Assembly (NCBI GenBank): GCA_021613535.1
Contig: CP075496.1
Location: 5,828,001-5,892,000 of the forward strand
Source: Adineta vaga
Lineage: Eukaryota; Animalia; Rotifera
DNA length: 64,000 nt
Direction of reading: 5' to 3'
The translations under genes and the position numbers were made by a program. The notes beneath the pieces were generated by a model. It saw only the letters and a program-made list of their open reading frames with translations, did not search any database and was not told where the DNA came from. This document shows positions 8,784 through 28,200 of the stretch, piece by piece. Position 1 is the first letter of the stretch. Each line of letters opens with the position of its first letter.

Positions 8784-11758
8784 ACTACTGTAAAAAAATA
8801 CAACAAAGAGTGTGAATGAGAAGAGAAGTAAGAGAATAGGAGCGGAGGCATGAAAAAAAGAGGAGAAAAAAAGAAGAGAAAAAGAATCACATTGACACAA
8901 CTAAATGGTGCCAACAGTCATACTGAGATTTCTTCTTTTACTATTCGATTTTCTTCTAATTCTCAGTATTTTCTCAACAATGATTGATAAAACATGTTTT
9001 TGAGAAACAATTTATTTCTAACAAAAAATGCAACCGAAATAATATGTTGTCTAAGATGATTATCAAATATGATACTGAATAAATGAATACAAAGAGAGAA
9101 AAATCCGAAAAAAGAAGAAGAAGAAGATAAAGAAAATCAATATTAAAAGCATCGAAAACATCATCATCATCACCATCATTCAATCAATTTGCAAGAAACT
9201 AACATACTTAATTGCTTCTCAAAGATCTATATCATAAGCACAATTGAAATCCTTGATGACATGTTCTTACAGAATTGACTATTATCGCTCGAATAGATAG
9301 AGAACAAAGATCTGCTTTTCTATATTCCCTCGACTTTATACATCATATAAGAACGAATAATTGTTAATTCTCAAACAGGAAATTCTACTTATCTCCTTCG
9401 TTAGTTTCTGTTCTTTCCTTTTTTCTTCTACGCTTTAAAAACGATAAGAAAGACAGAGCAAATCATGCACTTAACCAAGACCTTCGTCCTTATGGACAAA
9501 AAGTGGTTTAAAAAAAATAACATCAGACAGTAGAAGAGAGAAAGAAAAATCCCTCTCATATTAAAAGAATGACTGATTATAAATGATGTTTTTGTTGATA
9601 TGGGATTTAGTAACATTCTTCTTTGCCTTTCTTGGCCTTTACATTCCAGGCGATTTTGCGCTGATTAAGAAGAGTCCAATCATTTTTTTTACTAACCTCA
9701 CGTCATCATTGGATATTTACTTAGTATGCAATACGCATCAATAGTATCGTGAATTCAATACATCTGAAGTATTGCCTTGGCGTACAAAATTTCTTATTCA
9801 TTATTTCTATCGACTCGTTCTCGTAATCATCGATCAAGAGAGAAATATAGAAAGAGAAAATGCATGTAAACCAAATAACAAAAAAGAAAAAACTTGCGAT
9901 TTTTTAAGTAGAGATTAGTCGACTAATAGTCTATCAAATAAAATTAATGCAATGGATTAGAAATATCAAGCTAAATCATAAAGAAGTTCATTTTTTTAAA
10001 TTTTTTGTTCTCTTTTCTTGATTTGAAATAGTTTGTGAATATTCTTAATATGATGAAAATTATGAGTGAATCTATCATGTTTTTTTTGTTTATCTTTGCC
10101 GTAACTAAGTTAAGAATAGACACGTATAGATAAGACTTGACGAGTATAATGATTTAATTAACAACGATTTAGAAACGATGGAATTCGTGCGTCATCAAAC
10201 AATAAAATTTCCGACGTTCGATTTAACTAAATGAACTAGAAATATGTCTTTAGATCGAGATTTAACTACTAGTTTGATTAAGGAAAAGAAACACAATATA
10301 ATGCTATTCCGGAAGACTTATTGTTTGGACAAAATGTCGATGTTTACTGAATATTTAAAATATGTTTTGAGAAGATCAACAATAACCTTACCTTGTTTGT
10401 CAATCGTCGTTGTGCTTCTTCTTCTTCTTTTTTCTACTTCTCTTGAATACTGTTAAATAAAGACGAATCAGTCGTTTATGTCCTAAAAACACGTACAACA
10501 ATATTCATGAAATGGAAAAGAAGCTAACACGAAGACAGATGATTGCAACTACGGAAGATACATGATGTTTTCTTTACATCAAGTTTGACATGGTTTCTTA
10601 GAGATTATAATAATGTCAGTAACTCTCAGATGAAGGATTATTCTTGCAAGATCGAGGTGACGATATGATATTACTGATAGCACTTGTATATGTTAGAGAC
10701 AGTGGCATTATTATAATGTAAGAATTCTTGCTTTCTTTTGCTTCTCTTCTCATATTCTAATCCTAAATTATGAAAAGTAAATAAATACGAGCGACTGTCT
10801 ATCTTCGCATGTGTATAAAGCTGTCAAACAGTTGTATTTTCTCACCAAGTCACCGTAAAAACGAAAGAATAAAAAAGAAGAAATAAGATCGACAGACGGC
10901 AGATATGTAAAAAAAAAAAGAAAATGCTTCGAGAAATAATTATAATGGACCAGCTGCTCGTCTTGCTAACCGTACGGTTTCTTATAGGGCCTAGGCTATC
11001 AACGAACTGAATTTCTTTTCTTTTCTTTCACTATTACGGTTCCTATTTCTGCTTTTTCTTCTTTTTCTTCTCTTTCCATTAATATTCTTTAAAAAAAGGA
11101 TCGTTTATGAATATATAAACATAGAAAAAAAATCTCTATTCAATCTTTCAACAAATTTCCACTTGATGAATTTATCAAGAAACAGAAAAACATCTTTAGT
11201 TCTTATCGAAACTTAGAAACAGACATCGAAGTCATTACAATTGATCAATCGTATAAATAATAACCGATATCTTTTCTAATAAAGCAAAAAAATGGAACGA
11301 CTTCGTCTCAATAGCTTGTCATCTAACTGATAACGTTCGACGGGGCTTTCTCTTCTTCTAACAAATATATAAACGTCAGAAGCCCTTGACTGACTCTACA
11401 ACTTTTTTTTCATACTGATGAATTTCATAGACTATTAAGCAATTTTTTTCCCGTCACTTTAACGAAGGACGATGAAAGAAGCAAATCTTTGTTTGACGTT
11501 AGCTGCTATATGAATAGTAAGATAAGACTTCTTTAGTTGTTTAACGAGTTATTTTTCATTTGCACTATTCATTTCTTTCTTTCGGTAAGATGAGACGAGG
11601 TAGGAAATATAAGTTAAGAAATAATAACGACGATTAAATAAATAAAGACATCTGACAATGTTCTTTTCTTTTCTTTTCTATATTAACTAATGTCGTGTGG
11701 CATTTAGTGATGTACCATGTTGAAAACAGAAGAAAAAAAAAATAACAAATTAGATTTT

Positions 11759-13326
11759 TCATGGTTTCACACTATCGATATAGATCCATTCGAGGGCTCG
11801 AGCTGGACTTAATAATTTACAATAATGAAAACCAGCGACAGTTGAGACAGGATAATCCTTTGGTAAACGAAGTGTTGGCGAGCGTACAGTTACAACTGAT
11901 CTTCCCTGACTATCGGTACCAAGATCATATTTCTTTGAAAAGAAAAAAAAGTCATGACAGATAATTAATACTCCTCTTATTTTCAATATATATTAGATCT
12001 TACCAATGGTGTCCATATCCATAATGGACCAGCATTTAATGGACCAATATCATCGCCAATTAACATTTTTTTCCCTTTTTTCTCATATCTTTCTTTACTT
12101 CCATATCCAGCATTTTCTAAAGCCCAATCAAGTGCATGTTGATTAATCAAACCACATAAAGATTGATTATCTGTTTGATTAAAATCATGTTCTTTTCCAT
12201 CAGCAGCTTCAAGAAGCACTTGTCGGGAAATCATTTTTACACGCATTTCTTCTGCAGATGTATGTGTTTCACCCGTATCAAATTGATCAGTTAGATCATA
12301 GATATTCTGTGTTACCGTATGAACATTTAATATACAATTATTTAACGGTTTAATTGATGAACAATTATTATCCAAATGTGGAAAATGTTCAGGTATTTTA
12401 TAAACAATATGGAATTGATCTGAAATATTCAATTGAATCGTATCATTGAGTCCACTCATAATTTTTTGTGCATAAGTACTCCATGGACTACCTATTTGAC
12501 AATTGTCATTCGTTTGATTGTAACATGGCGGAAGAAAATGATAGAATCCTTCAAGATTTAATGCATCAAGATATGGTTGAGAAAAGTTTTTTGTCTGTTC
12601 TAAATGATATGCTAACATAGATGTTATTGTTTGATTATTTAAACGCATATTGATATAATCCGCAATTCGAATAGATAATTCTTGATGTGCTATTGTTTCA
12701 TTGATTTCTGATTCAATATCATTCTTAATAATATGACTCGATGGTTTACCTGATGCTGTATTCATATGATTCATTCCGGGAATAATTAATGTAAAATGAG
12801 GATAAATTGAAAAGAAATGAAATGATTCAATGATACGTGTAACACGTGCTAGACCATCGAGTTCGCCAGAAAGTATCAATGTTGATACGGGATATATTGT
12901 ACTTGTTGATTGATGTTTACGTTCAAGAAATGCGCCTGTTAAGATTTGTCCAAAGATTCTTTCCTGATATTTAATGGCTAAACTTTGCGATACGATACTA
13001 CCTAAACTATGACCGCCAAGAAAAATAGTTACATTTTTTGGCACACCAGAATGATATAATTTATCTAGAATTTCATCAATAACTTTTGGACGTAGTGCTT
13101 CGACCGGTATATTATCTGGAAAGGATGGAATAGCAATCCAAAGACTATAATTAGATGTGATTTGTACTTGTTTCAATAATGGAACATAACGTTCAGGTGG
13201 TAATTCAGCACCAGGAATAAATATGAATACAATTGGAATGGATTCTTCTTTAATCGGTTGAAGAATAATATCAGATGAGCAGATGATTAGATGAAATAAA
13301 TTGAAAATTAAAATTAGTTTTAGCAT
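11759..13326 (-). CDS. Secreted alpha/beta hydrolase-fold protein, 2 exons (13326-12004, 11932-11759)
   Basis: Signal peptide; FIPGA oxyanion region; nucleophile elbow GGHSLG; candidate Asp (GELDG) and His (GMNH); Cys-containing C-terminal extension ending HYCKLLSPARALEWIYIDS. A phase-0 GT-AG intron joins the two ORFs. Confidence 0.85.
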
Positions 13327-14104
13327 GATATAAACTTAGAGAAAACGTAAAACAATGAATCGCTATAGTATTCATTTTATATTGATCGACAAGTGCAGAT
13401 GAGAATCATTGACATATGTTAGGATTATATAATCAGGATAACAAAATTCGAAATAAATACGTATATGAAAAATATCGAATAAAATTTAATCTACTCCACT
13501 ACTACATATAGATAAGCAATATGTTCAGTTCAAAGTTCATTCTTTTGTTTGACAGACCATTGTTTTTGTTCGGAAAAATTTCTTCAAACAATTATCATCA
13601 TATTTTCGATTTATAAATACTAATATGGCTCAAAAATTTTCAATATATCAATTCATTGAATGTGATTAGAATCAAATTTATTTTGCATTTTGAGAAAAGA
13701 AATGACAACTAATTCATATCATTAAGAATGAAACATTTGGTGAACAACGCCCTTTTTTGAGTGACGAATAATAAGTGATAGATTTCACGCTTGTCCCTAG
13801 TAATTAATAGTAATGTATATTCACGCTTATTTTCTCGTCTATGAAACTGTTCTGTTTTAAATACTATCAGTTTTTCTTTTGTTATTAAAAAATGACCAAC
13901 TAATAGCGGCGTTTATTATCAAAAAGAATATTTAATCAAAAGAAAACATAAAAGGAAAAGTTTTATTTATTTATAAGAAAAAAAAAACTTTACAAAAAAA
14001 TAAGATCTATCAAAACATAGAATGAGTTATTGATAATTCTTAATTCATGAAAGCATAAAAAATGATAGATAAATTCCAATAAACGACAAATAGGAGCCAG
14101 AAAA

Positions 14105-14165
14105 AGGAAGAGTGTGTACCCGGTGACTGTATTAAAATCGAAGTGACCGTTTAAACAATCTTCCT
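14105..14165 (-). ncRNA. mir-36: pre-miRNA, miR-36 (miR-35/36) family; predicted 3p mature UCACCGGGUACACACUCUUCCU (14126-14105)
   Basis: 23-nt arms pair in register (18 of 23 positions) around a ~15-nt loop. The 3' arm starts UCACCGGGU, the seed of the miR-35/36 family. Confidence 0.9.
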
Positions 14166-14247
14166 ACAAACATAATCAAACTCTCCGGCTCGTTTATCTT
14201 CTTTTGAGAATAATTCTTCCATTATCGACAATTATTGATCGTATCAA

Positions 14248-14316
14248 AGGAAGAGTGTTATACCCGGTGATTTATTTCATATTCTAAATCAAATTAACCG
14301 GCTATCCAATCTTCTA
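14248..14316 (-). ncRNA. mir-36: pre-miRNA, miR-36 family; predicted 3p mature UCACCGGGUAUAACACUCUUCC (14270-14249)
   Basis: 5' arm GAAGAUUGGAUAGCCGGUUAAUUUG pairs with the UCACCGGGU-containing 3' arm with small bulges. Confidence 0.87.
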
Positions 14317-14393
14317 TCGAAAGAACAAAAGTTTTTCAGATAAAAATCAAGTAAACTCATGAAAAACATCTAAATTATTCTTTAAAAACATCA

Positions 14394-14473
14394 TCACTAA
14401 AGCTAAGTGTAGAACCCGGTGAGAAATCATTTTCATATCCACCTCTACCGAAGTTCCACCTAGCTTTAGTAAT
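14394..14473 (-). ncRNA. mir-36: pre-miRNA, miR-36 family; predicted 3p mature UCACCGGGUUCUACACUUAGCU (14422-14401)
   Basis: Perfect basal stem ACTAAAGCTA...TAGCTTTAGT; 5' arm GGUGGAACUUCGGUAGAG pairs with the seed arm. Confidence 0.9.
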
Positions 14474-14511
14474 ATGTCAAACGAAGAGAAGAAATAGATA
14501 ATATATCAAGT

Positions 14512-14609
14512 GAAGGTGCTCTCAATTAGGATGAGTGTGAGATCTAGTCATGAACTTGCAAAAACCACATAGACTAAATAACACAATCATATGAATCGGA
14601 GAGCTCTTC
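14512..14609 (-). ncRNA. mir-279: pre-miRNA, miR-279 family; predicted 3p mature UGACUAGAUCUCACACUCAUCC (14550-14529)
   Basis: Near-identical to canonical miR-279 (UGACUAGAUCCACACUCAU..). Star arm AUGAUUGUGUUAUUUAGUCUAUG; extended basal stem GCTCTC...GAGAGC. Confidence 0.92.
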
Positions 14610-16821
14610 TCTTCAAAGATTTTGTCATTAAGTATACTATCACCACAAACAATAAATACAAAATCCAAGCATAGCATGCAGATTTAATAAAAGAAAAAGT
14701 ATGATATATAGAGAAAGAGAGCAGCTCACCATGCTTTGATCCAATACTTCAATTGTTTTTTCCTTTTTTTGAATGCATATGTACATATATAGATATTAGT
14801 AAGTTTGACTAGGTTTATTTTGTTGTTGGTTTTTTCGTCTATAGATTTAACATAAGACAGAGAACGACGTTTTTTTGACGGTAGGAGACGACAATAAATG
14901 TTAAGACAAACGCGATGCAAATGAACAACTGGACGAGTTGGCCCGACGATTGACCCTATATACATTGTTTTCTATGTATTCTCTCTTGCTTCTCGTCGTT
15001 GTCGAAAAAAAGCAGTAAAAGAAAGCGAGCGAGCGAGAGGGAGAGAGAGAGAGAAAAAACCGTAAAGACAAGCGAAAGCTTGTATAAATGTATACTTGCA
15101 TCCGACCGTTGTCGATCGATGTCTAATATGAGCGACATGTTCAGATATGTACATTTTCTCTTCTCTTTCTCTCGATTTTTGACCGAACATTGACCTGTTT
15201 CTCTTTCTTTTTCTAAATGCTATTTTTGCCCGATACTAGCATACTATATCCATGCTTGTCTCTTCGATTTGTCCAATGGTAGAAATATGAACATCATCTT
15301 TCGTCTAAACATTGATAGATTTTTTTTCTCTTTCTGTCTTCATCCAGACATCCTGACCTTAGGAAAAAAGAAGTAACAGAAGAACGGACAACTGAACAAA
15401 CAGAAAAAAGATGGTTGGTTCAAAGATGTTATGTCTGACAAGTCTATTATTTTGGCTTAACGCCAAATTTATATACATAGACATATACTAACGACATATA
15501 GAAGCCATTTGAGGTAAAATAAAATCAAAACAAACGTGCAATAAGTGTCTGTTATGTTTGAGTAAAAAGCAATTGGCTGAATCCATTGATGATAATGAGG
15601 AAAAAAGAATAACACATCTGACAATATATTGATAGTTGTCTGGAGTTTTCATATCGTTTATGTTGAAATCATGTTCAAAATGAATTTCTTCTTCTTCGAG
15701 TCATTCAAACGATGAAGACATTACCGTATAGAATATGAACAATAACAAACGAAAAGTAACTGTAGGATTAAGCATGTTGTTAAATGTTCTATTTGTTTGA
15801 CAACGGCTTTATATCTGACGAAAGCTACTGAAGCTCTTTTAAGTATTTAACGGAAAAATCTTCATTGAAGAAAAAAGAAAACGAACGATCAATTCGACAT
15901 CCATCAATCGTTTGTCATTAGTGATGGTTTGTCTAGATTGATCTTATCTATTTCTTTTGTCAACACTTTACTTGAATAATCATTGTTGATGATCATCTGT
16001 TACGTGAGTTCAATATCAAAAACAAAATTAAAAACATTCATCAAATTACATAGAATGACAATGATGTAAGATCGGATCAGAATATCACTTTTATCTTTCA
16101 CTCACTCTGTAATTGACATCTATCAATGATGAAAGATCGCTTCTTTTTCGGAAAAAGAATATAAATTTATTCACTGAAATAACGTTATATCTCCGTTTGT
16201 TTTTGCTTAATTATCGTCAGTACTGAAAATCTTGCATTTAGCTATTGATAATGATGATCATTATTCTCAATAGTTAACACTCATATTCATTCATCTTCAT
16301 TTTGTTTGGACACTTCTGTCGTTCATCAGTGAATTAGATCGATACACTAGGGAGAAGACGAGCTTATTAACAGTATAAGATACATTACTCTGTTGATCTA
16401 CAAAATAACCATTAGTCTAATGTGTTGATGATTATTTATATCTCCTGATGTTTATAAACATCAAAAATACATTTTGTTTTATTTTTGTTTGTTTTTTGGC
16501 ATTGATTGAAAGATATCGGAATGATTTTGATTTCGATGAAGAGATGCAGTAGTCTGTTTATGACAGATTCGTAACATTTCGTTTGTTTTGATAGAACGAG
16601 ACAGACAGAAGAGAGTTTTAAGTAAGTGGTAGAGTGAGTGTTCTAATTGATGTTCTTTCAACTACAAATATTTGAACACTTGAACAATTTTTCGTCGTAC
16701 ATTCAAGTATTTGTAAGTGATGTCTATTGTATTGGAAGAAAAAAAGAAAACGAAACGTATGTTAAGTTCACAAATTGAAAGGTTCATATTAACAAAGAAT
16801 TCATCTATGTATGATATTTAT

Positions 16822-21900: not shown

Positions 21901-23191
21901 TTTGTCTACGACTATTATCTAAAATGGACAAAATCACAGATTTATTAGTCAATAAACACGAAATAATTTCTAAACTCTTCTTTTCTAGGCTACACACACT
22001 ATTTCAAAACATAATCCACATATTCATCCTCCACTTCGTGCTCACATTTCTAAACGTGATGCAAAAAGTTTTTTTCTTCATTGGATACCAAATTCATTGA
22101 ATGAATCTCAAAGAATTCTTGGTTACCGAATATATATTGACGATGTTTTCAAAGGGGCTATTGATTCTGGAAAATTCGAAGCTATTATTGATTATATTCG
22201 TGATGAAGGAGAATATAAAATCAAAATACGAACTTATAATCAAGATGGAGAATCGTCAGATTCAAATATTGTCATTGCGAGATTTCGTCGTCAACATTCA
22301 ACGATGCCAGCTTCGGAAGTAACAACATCACGACGACGAACGCAATCGGAACGTATTGCTGAAGATATCAATGAAAAACAAACAAATGAAGATTTAATAA
22401 TGTTATCGAGAAATCGAAGTCGAACACCGATTATTATGGATAAACGACGAAGTGATATTGAACAACCACAAGATCTTCTTTCAATAACACCAGAAAAAGA
22501 AACAGTAGATTGAAGAATTCTTCCTTCTCTTTCGATTTATCTACTTGCAATTTTAGATTTTAACTGATCAACCTTCCGATTCATCGACAAAAACAAGTCC
22601 TCATATGACAAGAAAAGATTATGCTGTTATGGGTAAACCACCAATATCACCTACATCGAGTCCTAATCGAACTGAGAGAAAATCACCGAACAGAGAATTC
22701 TGCGGTAAATAAAAAGAATTCATGATAATGTATATAATTGACAACGCAATTTTCTTTATAGGTCTTTCAACCAAACGAAGTCCTGTACGAGCAGGTATTA
22801 TGTCTCGTTTGACAAAGAGTTCTAATAAACTGAAACAAAATAGTAATCTTTTGAATGTTCCACCCATTGAACGAAGTAATAGTCCAACAGAATCGATAAA
22901 TATCTCGAAAAATGAAGTAAAATTCATCTAATTATTTCAATATGATTACATGATCTATTTTAGATGATGTCAGTCAAACGAACAATTACATTTCAACCTG
23001 ATTTAAACAGTAATGAACATGAATCTATAGTTAGTCAACAAATTCCAATAAGATCAACATTTGATCCAACGACTTCGATAGATGTTGATCATTTTACAAC
23101 ACGTTCTAGTACATTCTTATCAACGTCACCGTCCTCACCTCCTTCCAGAAGATCAACGAAATTTGTACCTACAAGCTCCCTCGATCAGTAG
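18970..23191 (+). CDS. CEP97: Centrosomal protein CEP97-like (N-terminal LRRs, coiled coil, additional FN3-like domain), multi-exon
   Basis: LRR array followed by the CEP97 signature [19 protein letters not shown]...[31 protein letters not shown]; coiled coil with QTSAISALW. True start uncertain. Confidence 0.88.
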
Positions 23192-23444
23192 ATGATGTCA
23201 ACAAACTGTATTTAAAATTGTCAGATATTCAGTTTTATGAACTTGATTCTGAGTGTTATTTTTTTTCTCTCTATTTCGATATAATTACAGAATATAACTT
23301 GTGTGCTAAGATGTATTGAATAACTCAACTGTTCATTGTGACATACACATATCATTTTTGACAATCTATTTTATATCAAAGACATTTATTCGTTGTAATA
23401 AAACAAGTGATAACAATACATTTGTTCGATAACTGTTTCAATTA

Positions 23445-25218
23445 CTAGCATGGCTTAGGCTGCCAACAATTGCACCATTCATCAGGTATTCCAGCAGTTC
23501 GACAAGTTCGATCATTAGATATGTTTTCAGAAAACAGATTGATTGCTTTTGGTAATGTTAAAGGCAATGAACTTTTAGCAAATCGAGCAAACGTCATATA
23601 AATATCACCGTGACTAATGAGTTTATCACTATTCGATTTTAAATAATTCATAATACTAGTTGAATCTTTCACATTTTTACCTATTAGAATATAAAGTGGC
23701 GGATTTCGATGATCAAATTCACGCCATAATTCTTTCCAATCATGTCCATGTAAACCATGATCACCGAGTATAATGAGTATTGTATTGTCCAATGCTTCAG
23801 ATTTATTTGCGGCAAGTAAAAAATCATGAAATGCCGTATCTAATACTGCATAATTAACTAATTCATCTTCAGTATGTGGATCGACCATATTATTTATTGA
23901 AAACCAACCACCTGAACGCATAGCGTTAAAGCGATCATAAAGATACGAAAACATTTCATCTGCTATCCATGTCGTACTTTTAATACAGCCACCTTTGTTG
24001 TTATATAATTCAACTGTATCACCACCAAATTCACCAAAATAATTACTTGCTAAAACACGATCAACAGTTTTAGAAGGAATGTAATTTGGCAATTGATAAC
24101 TATAACTTTCTAAGAGACTAGTTGCATAACCAGCTTGCTTGTACAAATTTAGAAGTGAAGTTTGTTGACAATTACCAGAACCACAGTATACTCTTCTCAT
24201 ATTTGGTTCAGAATTTCTTCCATTCACATTGAGATAACGAAATTCAATTCCTTTGGCATCTCTTAATGCCGATAAGGTATATGGAGTTGAATTGGATTTA
24301 CTAGGAAAAAAAATAGTCAAAGTAAATATACAATTATCTTTTTGTTTTGTCAGTTGAATAAATTTTATGTATTCTAAGAAACGATAATCTAACAGAACAA
24401 TCAGAAACAGTTTTATATGATGTGAGGTATTTTTCTTCTTCTTGAAGTTTCTTTAAACAGCATAAAATGAATATACCTGTAAGCTGTGAGGAGACTATAA
24501 GAACGTGGCATTCTTCTATACATTGCTTGTCGACCAAGAGCATCGAATTGTAGAAACACAACGTTCGGTTTCTGCTTGGCAGCGGCAGATGGTTCAGGAA
24601 GCGGTCGAGAATGCAAATGCAGACGAGTAACCGGCTCTGAATAAAATGGAAGACTACATTGAGTGTAAACCCATTCATGATCTCCCATATTAACAGGACT
24701 GATATAATTCTCTAGAAGTGAATTTCGAGTTCGAAAACCATATTTTGGTTGCATCGATGGTGGACAATCAATAACTAATGTATTATTAGTTCTGATTATT
24801 TTTGAAAACGTTGGCGCCCAACAACCATGTCGATACATCGGTCCCCATCTACAAAAAAAATTTCTCTCAGTACCGATCAACATAATCAAATTCTACAAGA
24901 TTAAAAGAACACTTACCGATGCCGCCATATAAAGTCTAATGTCGATGCCAAACTACGACTGTCAGTTTCTGGTATATAACAATTACGCAACTTTTCGTTG
25001 ACTTGAACATTGTATTCACTTCTTGGTGCATTTGGTCGAAACCTGATATTTGAATCACATACATTTCCTTTATTCTCTTGTATAAAGATAGTTCTATTGA
25101 ATATTTTATAATTTATTGAAGTTCTAGTCAGTATATGAGGAAATGTTAGAATTGAAAAAAGTGTTACAACCAAAAAGGCAAGTGCCATCAATACATAATG
25201 ATAGCAAGGTTTTGTCAT
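23445..25218 (-). CDS. DUF229-like type II membrane protein (alkaline phosphatase/sulfatase superfamily), 3 exons
   Basis: N-terminal TM anchor; KPNVVFLQFDALGRQAMYRRMPRS, PHTED, TILIILGDHG and C-terminal RTCRTAGIPDEWCNC. Introns at about 24916-24850 and 24478-24301. Confidence 0.8.
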
Positions 25219-28200
25219 GGTCTGTTCAATTTATATGAATTCATGCAATAATCGATGTTAGCGATCAATTTCTAATCATAAACAACGAGACAGATGACTT
25301 CAATATCTAGAATAACAAAATAACTTTTTAAGAATTCCAAATAAAAACTCATCTGTATGTCTACAGATACGTCATCAAATAGATTTGAAGTTCGAAAATG
25401 AAAATACGAATAGTCATATGTCATTGCCTGACGAAATTCTTTCGTTTTCTACACATATATAATGGTTGTCAATGAAGATAGTTAAGAAACTTCGAAAATA
25501 ATCTCATCAATTCTAAAATAGAAATAAACTGGGACAATTTCGTGGAAAAGACGCGTAAATGATTAACCATCAAATATTGAATAGTTTGACGCTAAGAAAA
25601 TAGTATCATATTTCCCTAATCTATTTATTTGCTATATAATAAATCTTTTAATGCAAGGTTAGAAGAAAAAAATCGGTGCAATCAATAAATATCATATTTA
25701 CTTTCATGAAGACAAAACTACATGGAATATTTTCAAATAACTACGTACAATCGTTATTTAGTGAGTTTATTTCATTGATACGTGACTTCTTCAAAGAAAA
25801 ATCTTTTTTTTTGATAGATATGTTCGATTTTTCTCTTATTTAAATCAAAATATCACACATACTCGTACATTTCTGTTAATTAACTTTTCTCTACGTTTAC
25901 CAATGATATCGATGTATAACCACCTTCATTTTCTCTAGAATATTTCTGCTATCTGAAGATTGAATGATGATTAATCGATAAACACGTGCGAATTATCAAA
26001 TGACTAAATACTAAGATAGAAAATCTCATTAAGATTTCATTGTCATTCATTTTTCATATATCGCACTCTTCTATCATTTGTATATGTAGATAAAACATGT
26101 GCTTGAATTCAAACAATGTATTAATAGTAATAATATCTACACCTTTAGAAATCCAAAATCATACTGACGCAGACTGTTGAAAAGAAATCAGTGAAAGTGT
26201 GGAGGTCGATATCATGCTCATGTTGAGAGAGATCTCGACAACGATTGATATGACTATACTAATATTTAACGACAGACTATGAAGAAAGAAGTTGCTGTAT
26301 GATATACTTTTGGTTTCTATCATCAGTCATTCTATAAAATATGTTGTCAATTTCTAGTCACTATCAGTATATCTTTAAAACGCTCTACTAATCATACTAT
26401 ATATATACAGCATGATTTCGATTTGTCGTCCAAATGATCTCTAATTATATTATCAAAATTTATTTCATTTACATACAAAACGTAGATATGGTATACATCA
26501 TTTTCTCAACATATAGATCTATTAGTTAAAAAAAAATATTCAATTGAAATGATCATTATGATATTTTACTATGACTACTGGCTCGAGAATAGAGAAACAC
26601 GGTAGAAAGACAGAGATTGACAATGACGTTATGTGTAATATGACTAGCAAGCACATATAGTCAATTTGCACAGCATGTTCGTCATATATTAACTATTGTC
26701 AATATTAATGCTCGCGAGAGAAAAAGAAAAGAGTAGAATTCTAACGTTACTTGAGCAATTAGAGAAAAACAATCAGTTTTTCTTTATTCGGTAAAGTAAA
26801 GCCAATCTGTAGTTGATATGATTTTTATAGTTTAACTGAAATATAGTAAGCTAAACTGCAAGATATATTCTATAAAAGAAAAATATACATATTTTACTTT
26901 AGTCAAAGCAGTACGCATACATTTTTTAATATTTATCTATGATTCGACAGATAATTTGATCGTTAATAATACGATCAATGTCTAATACGTAAAAAAAACT
27001 GACTTTATGACTTTGTAAAGTATATAAATCATCATTTTAACATACTTTCTTTTACTTTTTCTTGAAGACTAAATATGATTAATATTGGACATTTACCAGG
27101 AATTAAAACTAGTCGACGCGATATGTTCGTATCACCATCACTATAATATGAGCATGTGCACTAGGTGGGATAAACTAACTCTTTATTATGAACGTGCATA
27201 TTTTTCTTTTTTATATTTACAAAAGTTTTTGTATGTCAAGTCTTTATTCATAAATCAAAGACGTCACATGACGTTAGCAAATATATAATCTATATGTTTT
27301 AGAAAAGTAGTTTAATCAGTATTTTTTTAGACAAGTCACTACTTCGTATTTCTCAAAGATAAAGTTTCCATTGATATTTCGATTCGACGCACATATAGAC
27401 ATCATCTAATATTGATTTTTCATTTTTCTCACTCATTTACAAATAGCTAATAAAACGATATATATATATTAGCTTAGCAAAGTTTTATAGATATAAATTA
27501 GATAAGTCATGTATAATAGGAAATCCAAGGAAAAATTTCCAAAATAGAAATACTAAAAACTACAATGCTTAAAAGATAACGAATAAAATCTCAGTTTTCT
27601 ATACTTTTCTCTGATTAAACACCTTATTCTGATAGATATCTGTTCATACTAATGCTTATTTAACTGTATCTGTACGTTACTGCGCCTATAAATACACTAT
27701 ATTGATCTTGTCTACCTTTATGTTACGTTTTTTCTTTTATTCCTATCGTCACAAGAATACTTTTGGAAGGAGACTTCGATTCTTCCGTTTATTTTCATAT
27801 ACTAATCTTTACATATCAATACACATATCGGTGTCTCGTCCTTCATACCTGTTCTCTGATTTCTCTTTTCATTGATCAATCGTTATATGTTCGCATTGGT
27901 TTCTACAAACGCTTTTTAAAATTTTTCAAAAATATCTGTCCAAATATTCTCAATATGAATCAGTCATTGATTTGATTTAGTTTCACTTTTCTTGCACGTG
28001 TTATTTTCGAGTATGTAGAATAATAAGTAAATTTTGAATAAAATAAAATATACCTTTCTTCCTCTCTAATAGTTGACATGTAAAGACAATTTGTAATTCT
28101 AGATGATGGATGAAAAACCGTTCTACAATTGTCTCAGGTGGTGTCTTTTGAACTAGGAAAAGTATGTAAAATTCATATTTTAACTAACCATTGAATGTTC

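Follow-up and report, generated by a model that had tools for sequence, protein, structure and literature searches.

The minus strand of Adineta vaga contig C4 carries a compact group of four hairpins, one of the miR-279 family followed by three paralogues with the miR-36 seed, within the 64-kb stretch of DNA analyzed here (the window). We regard it as very probable that this is a bdelloid polycistronic microRNA locus of four hairpins with guides on the 3p arms; the hairpins, their seeds, the 3p position of the guides, and a conservation gradient across arms, loops, and spacers were all observed directly. An earlier note on this DNA had proposed such a same-strand microRNA cluster, and its reading is borne out by the folds, by the seeds, and by conservation of the arms in a homoeologous copy and in environmental relatives.

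Four hairpins on the minus strand

The miR-279-family pre-miRNA hairpin comes first (14517-14605, minus strand), with a predicted 3p mature sequence at 14550-14529, UGACUAGAUCUCACACUCAUCC, and a 5p arm at 14590-14570. Three miR-36-family pre-miRNA hairpins follow on the same strand: hairpin a (14391-14475; predicted 3p mature sequence 14422-14401, UCACCGGGUUCUACACUUAGCU; 5p arm 14465-14446), hairpin b (14246-14318; predicted 3p mature sequence 14270-14249, UCACCGGGUAUAACACUCUUCC; 5p arm 14314-14294), and hairpin c, measured with its basal stem (14099-14190; predicted 3p mature sequence 14126-14105, UCACCGGGUACACACUCUUCCU; 5p arm 14165-14144). The 3p starts that the earlier note had placed at 14550, 14422, 14270, and 14126 were reproduced to the base by reading the strand and by an exact-match scan, and they lie 128, 152, and 144 nt apart, in keeping with the spacing of ~130-150 nt that it had given. 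Also as it had stated, the 3p arm begins with UGACUAGAU at 14550 in the miR-279 hairpin and with UCACCGGGU in all three miR-36-type hairpins. The three miR-36 paralogues combine a common seed with diverged 3' halves; since a, b, and c differ at positions 10-22 of the guide, supplementary pairing could differ among them.

Folding places all four predicted guides on the 3' arm, and every fold is stable, with free energies of -22.7 to -40.5 kcal/mol and z-scores of -2.6 to -7.9 relative to 200 dinucleotide shuffles. The miR-36a hairpin is the strongest (-40.5 kcal/mol, z -7.9) and, like the miR-279 hairpin (-31.6 kcal/mol, z -3.9), it was matched by none of the 200 shuffles; two of the 200 folded as well as miR-36c (-29.7 kcal/mol, z -3.1) and five as well as miR-36b (-22.7 kcal/mol, z -2.6). 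Each is an imperfect hairpin of the kind recognized by MirGeneDB, with 28-37 predicted pairs and most guide bases paired within the stem.

The concentration of the seed pattern in the cluster far exceeds chance. The 9-mer TCACCGGGT occurs 158 times across the 100.8-Mb genome and three times in the window, each time in the cluster and on the minus strand, and the pattern TCACCGGGTN{3,4}CAC has eight genomic matches against none for a reversed control, six of the eight being the window cluster and its homoeologue on C1. The remaining two matches, C2:11784447 and C5:11543733, have no hairpin fold. The search for other miR-36-seed sites covered, among the matches listed, 100 of the 158 TCACCGGGT sites. 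We also rejected 14 further CGGT...TCACCGGG matches, whose folds are weak or two-stemmed with the guide poorly paired to the 5p arm, and eight further miR-279-like matches to TGACTAGATN{1,4}ACAC, which form no hairpins and are about as numerous as in the control.

Conservation in the C1 copy and among environmental relatives

The window (C4:5828001-5892000) belongs to a six-contig genome of 100,824,805 bases and ~30% G+C that we take to be AV20 of A. vaga. AV20 is a haploid assembly of six scaffolds whose chromosomes 1-3 have chromosomes 4-6 as their homoeologues (PMC8494291); the homoeologue of C4, the contig that contains the window, is C1. The sole other genomic match to the cluster lies on C1, where a second four-hairpin cluster (C1:7621745-7622212) keeps the same order within flanks that are colinear with the window. 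Between the two copies, 87 of 88 positions are identical in the 3p guides, 71 of 84 in the 5p arms, 60 of 82 in the loops, and 64 of 160 in the spacers; the miR-36b 3p arm is unchanged, and the fold energies of the copies are similar. A MAFFT alignment of the six miR-36 hairpins puts the type a 5p arms out of register, and for this reason the RNAalifold consensus was weak (-3.95 kcal/mol). As a separate observation on the two contigs, C4 begins with (CCCACA)n telomeric repeats (C4:1-400), which are absent from the first 400 bases of C1; the unit is the reverse complement of TGTGGG, the telomere repeat given for Adineta vaga (PMC8494291).

Fifteen metagenome contigs contain the exact first 20 bases of the miR-279 guide, and the order 279-36a-36b-36c is complete in 13 of them. 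The 14th has a broken 36b, and the 15th ends 62 nt past the match, before the miR-36 hairpins. In the 14th (L048:570-1052, from ERZ781399 NODE-11791, C1-type), a 13-nt deletion removes UCAC, the first four mature bases of 36b, whose guide also has one base change; with its three companion hairpins intact, the contig records a natural loss of one paralogue. The indels listed for the relatives' contigs are confined to spacers or to the miR-279 loop.

In an alignment of 13 distinct sequences, invariant columns make up 81 of 88 (92%) in the 3p arms, 59 of 84 (70%) in the 5p arms, 39 of 82 (48%) in the loops, and 23 of 185 (12%) in the spacers. The mature arms thus outlast the loops, as the earlier note had asked to see, and the descent from 3p arm to 5p arm to loop to spacer reads as a microRNA signature. 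Paired states are kept in 88.6-95.6% of pair cells. Compensatory double changes are seen at five stem pairs, of which hairpin a accounts for four. Taken hairpin by hairpin, the miR-279 arms are nearly fixed (20 of 21 columns invariant in the 5p arm, 22 of 22 in the 3p arm), and in miR-36a the 3p arm is invariant in 21 of 22 columns and the loop in 9 of 23. The miR-36b 3p arm is invariant in 17 of 22 columns, with every variable column due to the contig carrying the broken copy. The miR-36c 3p arm is invariant in 21 of 22, and its sole variable position (11, C or U) tells apart the two homoeologue types.

A maximum-likelihood tree separates C4-type from C1-type sequences with 100/100 support and places several environmental lineages in each, so that the four-hairpin unit predates the duplication and the divergence of these taxa. 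The proposal of a lineage-specific expansion of miR-36 therefore stands in part: the tandem triplication is real, but on the evidence of the tree it arose before the genome of bdelloids was duplicated and before several environmental lineages separated. Because all structural and evolutionary tests were passed, the cluster makes a clean positive control for microRNA gene finding from sequence alone.

Family membership, catalogue entries, and transcription

The MIR-279 seed GACUAGA occupies positions 2-8 of the first 3p guide. The hairpin gives a full-length match to the Rfam model mir-279 (RF00754) at 33.7 bits (E 5e-4 locally, ~1e-3 genome-wide), and the C1 copy does so at 35.3 bits, both below the gathering score of 56. 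Nearly all aligned bases of the guide match the Rfam consensus, with one inserted base; the guide is nearer to this consensus than to the flatworm miR-61 type, and its similarity to flatworm Mir-279 (16 of 22 bases identical) extends past the seed.

In the other three hairpins, positions 2-8 of the 3p guide read CACCGGG, the MIR-36 seed; this holds for both homoeologues and 13 environmental contigs, and one contig has the broken b copy. Curated models respond to hairpin a alone: Rfam mir-36_2 (RF04298, clan CL00088) scores 14.6 bits (E 5.2) against a gathering score of 46, and mir-5316, whose consensus also contains CACCGGG, gives a sub-threshold 23.6 of 70 bits; miR-36-type Rfam models gave no match to hairpins b and c. 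In gapped global alignments, the guides share 15-19 of 22 bases with emu-miR-36a/b (PMC8016320) and Fhe-Mir-36-P1 (PMC7878377), compared with 5-14 for cross-family pairs, and similarity to these accepted MIR-36 members extends past the seed. The first ten bases of hairpins b and c, UCACCGGGUA, are identical to those of the flatworm guides emu-miR-36a/b-3p and Fhe-Mir-36-P1, with further matches in the 3' half, and flatworm Mir-36 and Mir-279 (emu-miR-61, Fhe-Mir-279) guides sit on the 3p arm, as in the rotifer. Exact seeds, 3p-arm position, and identity past the seed to flatworm guides together support membership in the two families, though all scores fall below the thresholds of the curated models.

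The earlier note had described the microRNAs of this group as poorly catalogued, a description that no longer holds. MirGeneDB 3.0 annotates 129 microRNA genes in Adineta vaga from the small RNA libraries SRR3185495 and SRR3187155 (Herlyn et al. 2025, PMC12256650). Reads are recorded for seven Mir-36 genes (P26a/b, P27, P28a/b, and P29a/b; PMC12256650, Supplementary File 1) and for at least five of eight Mir-279 genes (P21a/b, P22a/b, and P24b; PMC12256650). Together, the Mir-36 genes and Mir-279-P21a/b span 10^2 to 2.6x10^4 reads per million, with Mir-36-P26a/b at about 23,000-26,000 and 10,000-12,000 in the two libraries, respectively, and Mir-279-P21a/b at 15,516 and 5,329 (PMC12256650). 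The catalogue thus lists, for the same species and the same two families, Mir-279-P21a/b and three Mir-36 a/b pairs (P26, P28, and P29), and three such pairs are what two homoeologous clusters with three miR-36 hairpins apiece would be expected to give. P21a and P21b have near-equal counts (15515.6 versus 15516.3 reads per million; PMC12256650), in accord with miR-279 hairpins whose arms are identical on C4 and C1. Judging from these counts and from the a/b pairing, by which we infer the match of genes to coordinates, the cluster is very probably already catalogued with read support in MirGeneDB.

The same source also counts MIR-36 among ten microRNA families lost in bdelloids (PMC12256650). 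Its sheets disagree: the family table ('species microRNA families') gives Mir-36 as zero in all 25 syndermatans and Mir-279 as eight for A. vaga, whereas the sheet 'microRNA expression' holds the seven Mir-36 genes with A. vaga reads (PMC12256650). Mir-36-P26a/b also have Brachionus and Seison counts there, and P27 has Brachionus counts. The zero likely reflects a failure of covariance models to recognize hairpins this diverged, a failure that the Rfam models share here. A genome with six conserved miR-36-seed hairpins contradicts the reported loss of MIR-36, and this bears on loss counts taken from covariance models.

Two other accounts of the hairpins deserve weighing against these results. 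The UCACCGGGU hairpins might be real microRNAs of a family born in rotifers that reached the miR-36 seed by convergence instead of descending from protostome MIR-36. Such an origin would suit the far sub-threshold scores of the Rfam miR-36-type covariance models, with two of three hairpins unmatched, as well as the MirMachine models, which score Mir-36 as absent in every rotifer. We consider it improbable all the same, given that the identity to flatworm Mir-36 runs past the seed and above the cross-family range, that the guide lies on the same arm as in flatworms, that the A. vaga genes bear the name Mir-36 in MirGeneDB 3.0, and that the hairpins are linked to miR-279, as at the nematode mir-42-44 locus (for the family assignments of the nematode genes, see PMC4238352). 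Less credible still, and very improbable, is that the hairpins are conserved as structured parts of a regulatory region or non-coding RNA, uncut by Drosha or Dicer. Processing at the locus is itself a prediction, which leaves room for this account, but one arm outconserves its own pairing partner while the loops vary, which is the mark of a guide strand and not of a purely structural stem; both seeds match those of ancient microRNA families exactly, and published A. vaga reads exist for such genes.

On the mechanism that we propose, a single minus-strand primary transcript would carry miR-279, miR-36a, miR-36b, and miR-36c in that order, and the four hairpins would serve as Drosha and Dicer substrates to be processed at the locus into 22-nt RNAs. 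By established microRNA biology, the 3p arm of each would be the guide strand loaded into Argonaute, and the guides would repress mRNAs through 3'UTR sites by way of the seeds GACUAGA and CACCGGG. Evidence on transcription came from assembled Logan contigs, which by their nature do not represent 22-nt reads. DNA runs from 2013 contain the cluster stretch; A. vaga runs guessed to be RNA contain none of it (0.00 of its words), and portions of it occur in metatranscriptomes from moss, soil, plants, and the phyllosphere. One moss library, recorded as RNA, yielded a contig spanning 14082-14302 (hairpins c and b) and another spanning 14519-14614 (the miR-279 hairpin) with one change, and a run only guessed to be RNA yielded a contig at 14136-14563 that takes in all of a and b and parts of c and miR-279. 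This coverage fits a polycistronic primary transcript; carried-over DNA could also account for the metatranscriptome contigs.

The hairpins could instead derive from separate transcripts, or from two or more units, and not from one polycistron. In favor of this, no contig from a library recorded as RNA covers all four hairpins. Set against this are the short spacers (~40-70 nt between hairpin bases) with only 12% invariant columns, the confinement of conserved non-coding blocks to the region upstream of the first hairpin, the guessed-RNA contig at 14136-14563, and the recorded-RNA contig over two hairpins, and on balance we think separate transcription unlikely and favor the single polycistron. 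In a run labelled as another organism and of unknown library type (X2), a 234-nt contig identical to the window at 13907-14140 extends from the interior of hairpin c to ~200 nt downstream, and AATAAA signals occur on the minus strand at ~13967 and ~13917; the primary transcript may have its 3' part here.

Upstream region, related clusters, and neighborhood

Long blocks are kept between the homoeologues over ~900 nt upstream of the first hairpin, and the conserved non-coding blocks at 14855-15583 (minus strand) show 66-75% identity to C1 with long invariant stretches. Within them, a perfect TTGGCN5GCCAA palindrome (15452-15466, plus strand) is shared by both homoeologues and five environmental contigs. 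Three RGGTCA half-sites (TGACCT at 15191 and 15354) are likewise shared by both homoeologues and recur, at comparable distances, in all environmental contigs that reach far enough upstream. We take the palindrome and the half-sites to resemble NFI and nuclear-receptor sites, respectively. The region is putatively regulatory, as a promoter or an enhancer, or else forms the 5' portion of the primary transcript, and its conserved blocks would be the source of cluster regulation. A match to snoZ178 at 15004-15169 was dismissed as CT-rich low-complexity sequence (24.4 of 100 bits). Farther out, 1.3 kb upstream of the cluster, a stable single-stemmed hairpin at 15870-15964 (minus strand; -28.8 kcal/mol, z -3.0) has no copy on C1 or elsewhere in the genome and is not counted in the cluster.

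In C. elegans, mir-42, mir-43, and mir-44 are physically clustered, and the mir-35 family is essential in embryos. The rotifer cluster resembles this mir-42-44 locus, in which mir-42, with the miR-36 seed, is linked to mir-44, of the miR-279 family, and more loosely the fly mir-309 cluster; its tandem expansion of the miR-36 family also recalls C. elegans mir-35-41. The nematode mir-42-44 cluster differs in order and content and has a miR-2-family gene that the rotifer cluster lacks; the 3' halves of the guides diverge between the two animals, and an essential embryonic function is shown in the nematode only. The family assignments of mir-42 and mir-44 follow PMC4238352. The Drosophila mir-309~6 cluster combines mir-286, of the miR-279 family, with mir-3 and mir-309, two genes that Mohammed et al. 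2014 (PMC4238352) grouped with the C. elegans mir-36-42 family. That cluster differs in having eight hairpins of four families and the seed CACUGGG in place of the rotifer CACCGGG, and the same authors argue that it was assembled from dispersed copies (PMC4238352). In flatworms, by contrast with the rotifer, Mir-36 and Mir-279 genes are not reported as clustered together in PMC8016320 and PMC7878377.

A broader reading is that linkage of miR-279 with miR-36-type genes goes back to an ancestral protostome polycistron, surviving in rotifers (in both homoeologues since bdelloids duplicated their genome) and in nematodes (mir-42-44), and persisting in flies in a modified form (mir-286 with mir-3 and mir-309), with a shared early-embryo role and driven by the upstream RGGTCA and TTGGCN5GCCAA elements. 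We offer this tentatively and think it doubtful as a whole. The linkage itself recurs in rotifers, nematodes, and flies; a search of the literature on Mir-36/Mir-279 linkage found no statement of it outside nematodes and flies. An embryonic or maternal role for the cluster may likewise be suggested by analogy, from C. elegans mir-35-42 and from stage data for like-named Capitella genes: Mir-279-P22a peaks at the 2-4-cell stage and Mir-36-P26a in larvae (PMC12256650).

On the same strand, 780 nt downstream of the cluster, lies an intron-less 447-aa ORF (11983-13326, minus strand) with an alpha/beta-hydrolase domain (Pfam Abhydrolase_5, E 1.3e-7). A search for contigs encoding this ORF found none; at the nucleotide level, one moss metatranscriptome has diverged contigs over it. 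The ORF is single copy in the genome and absent from the colinear part of C1, which measures 3.2 kb there versus 5.5 kb here, and either a lineage-specific insertion or gene acquisition could explain its presence.
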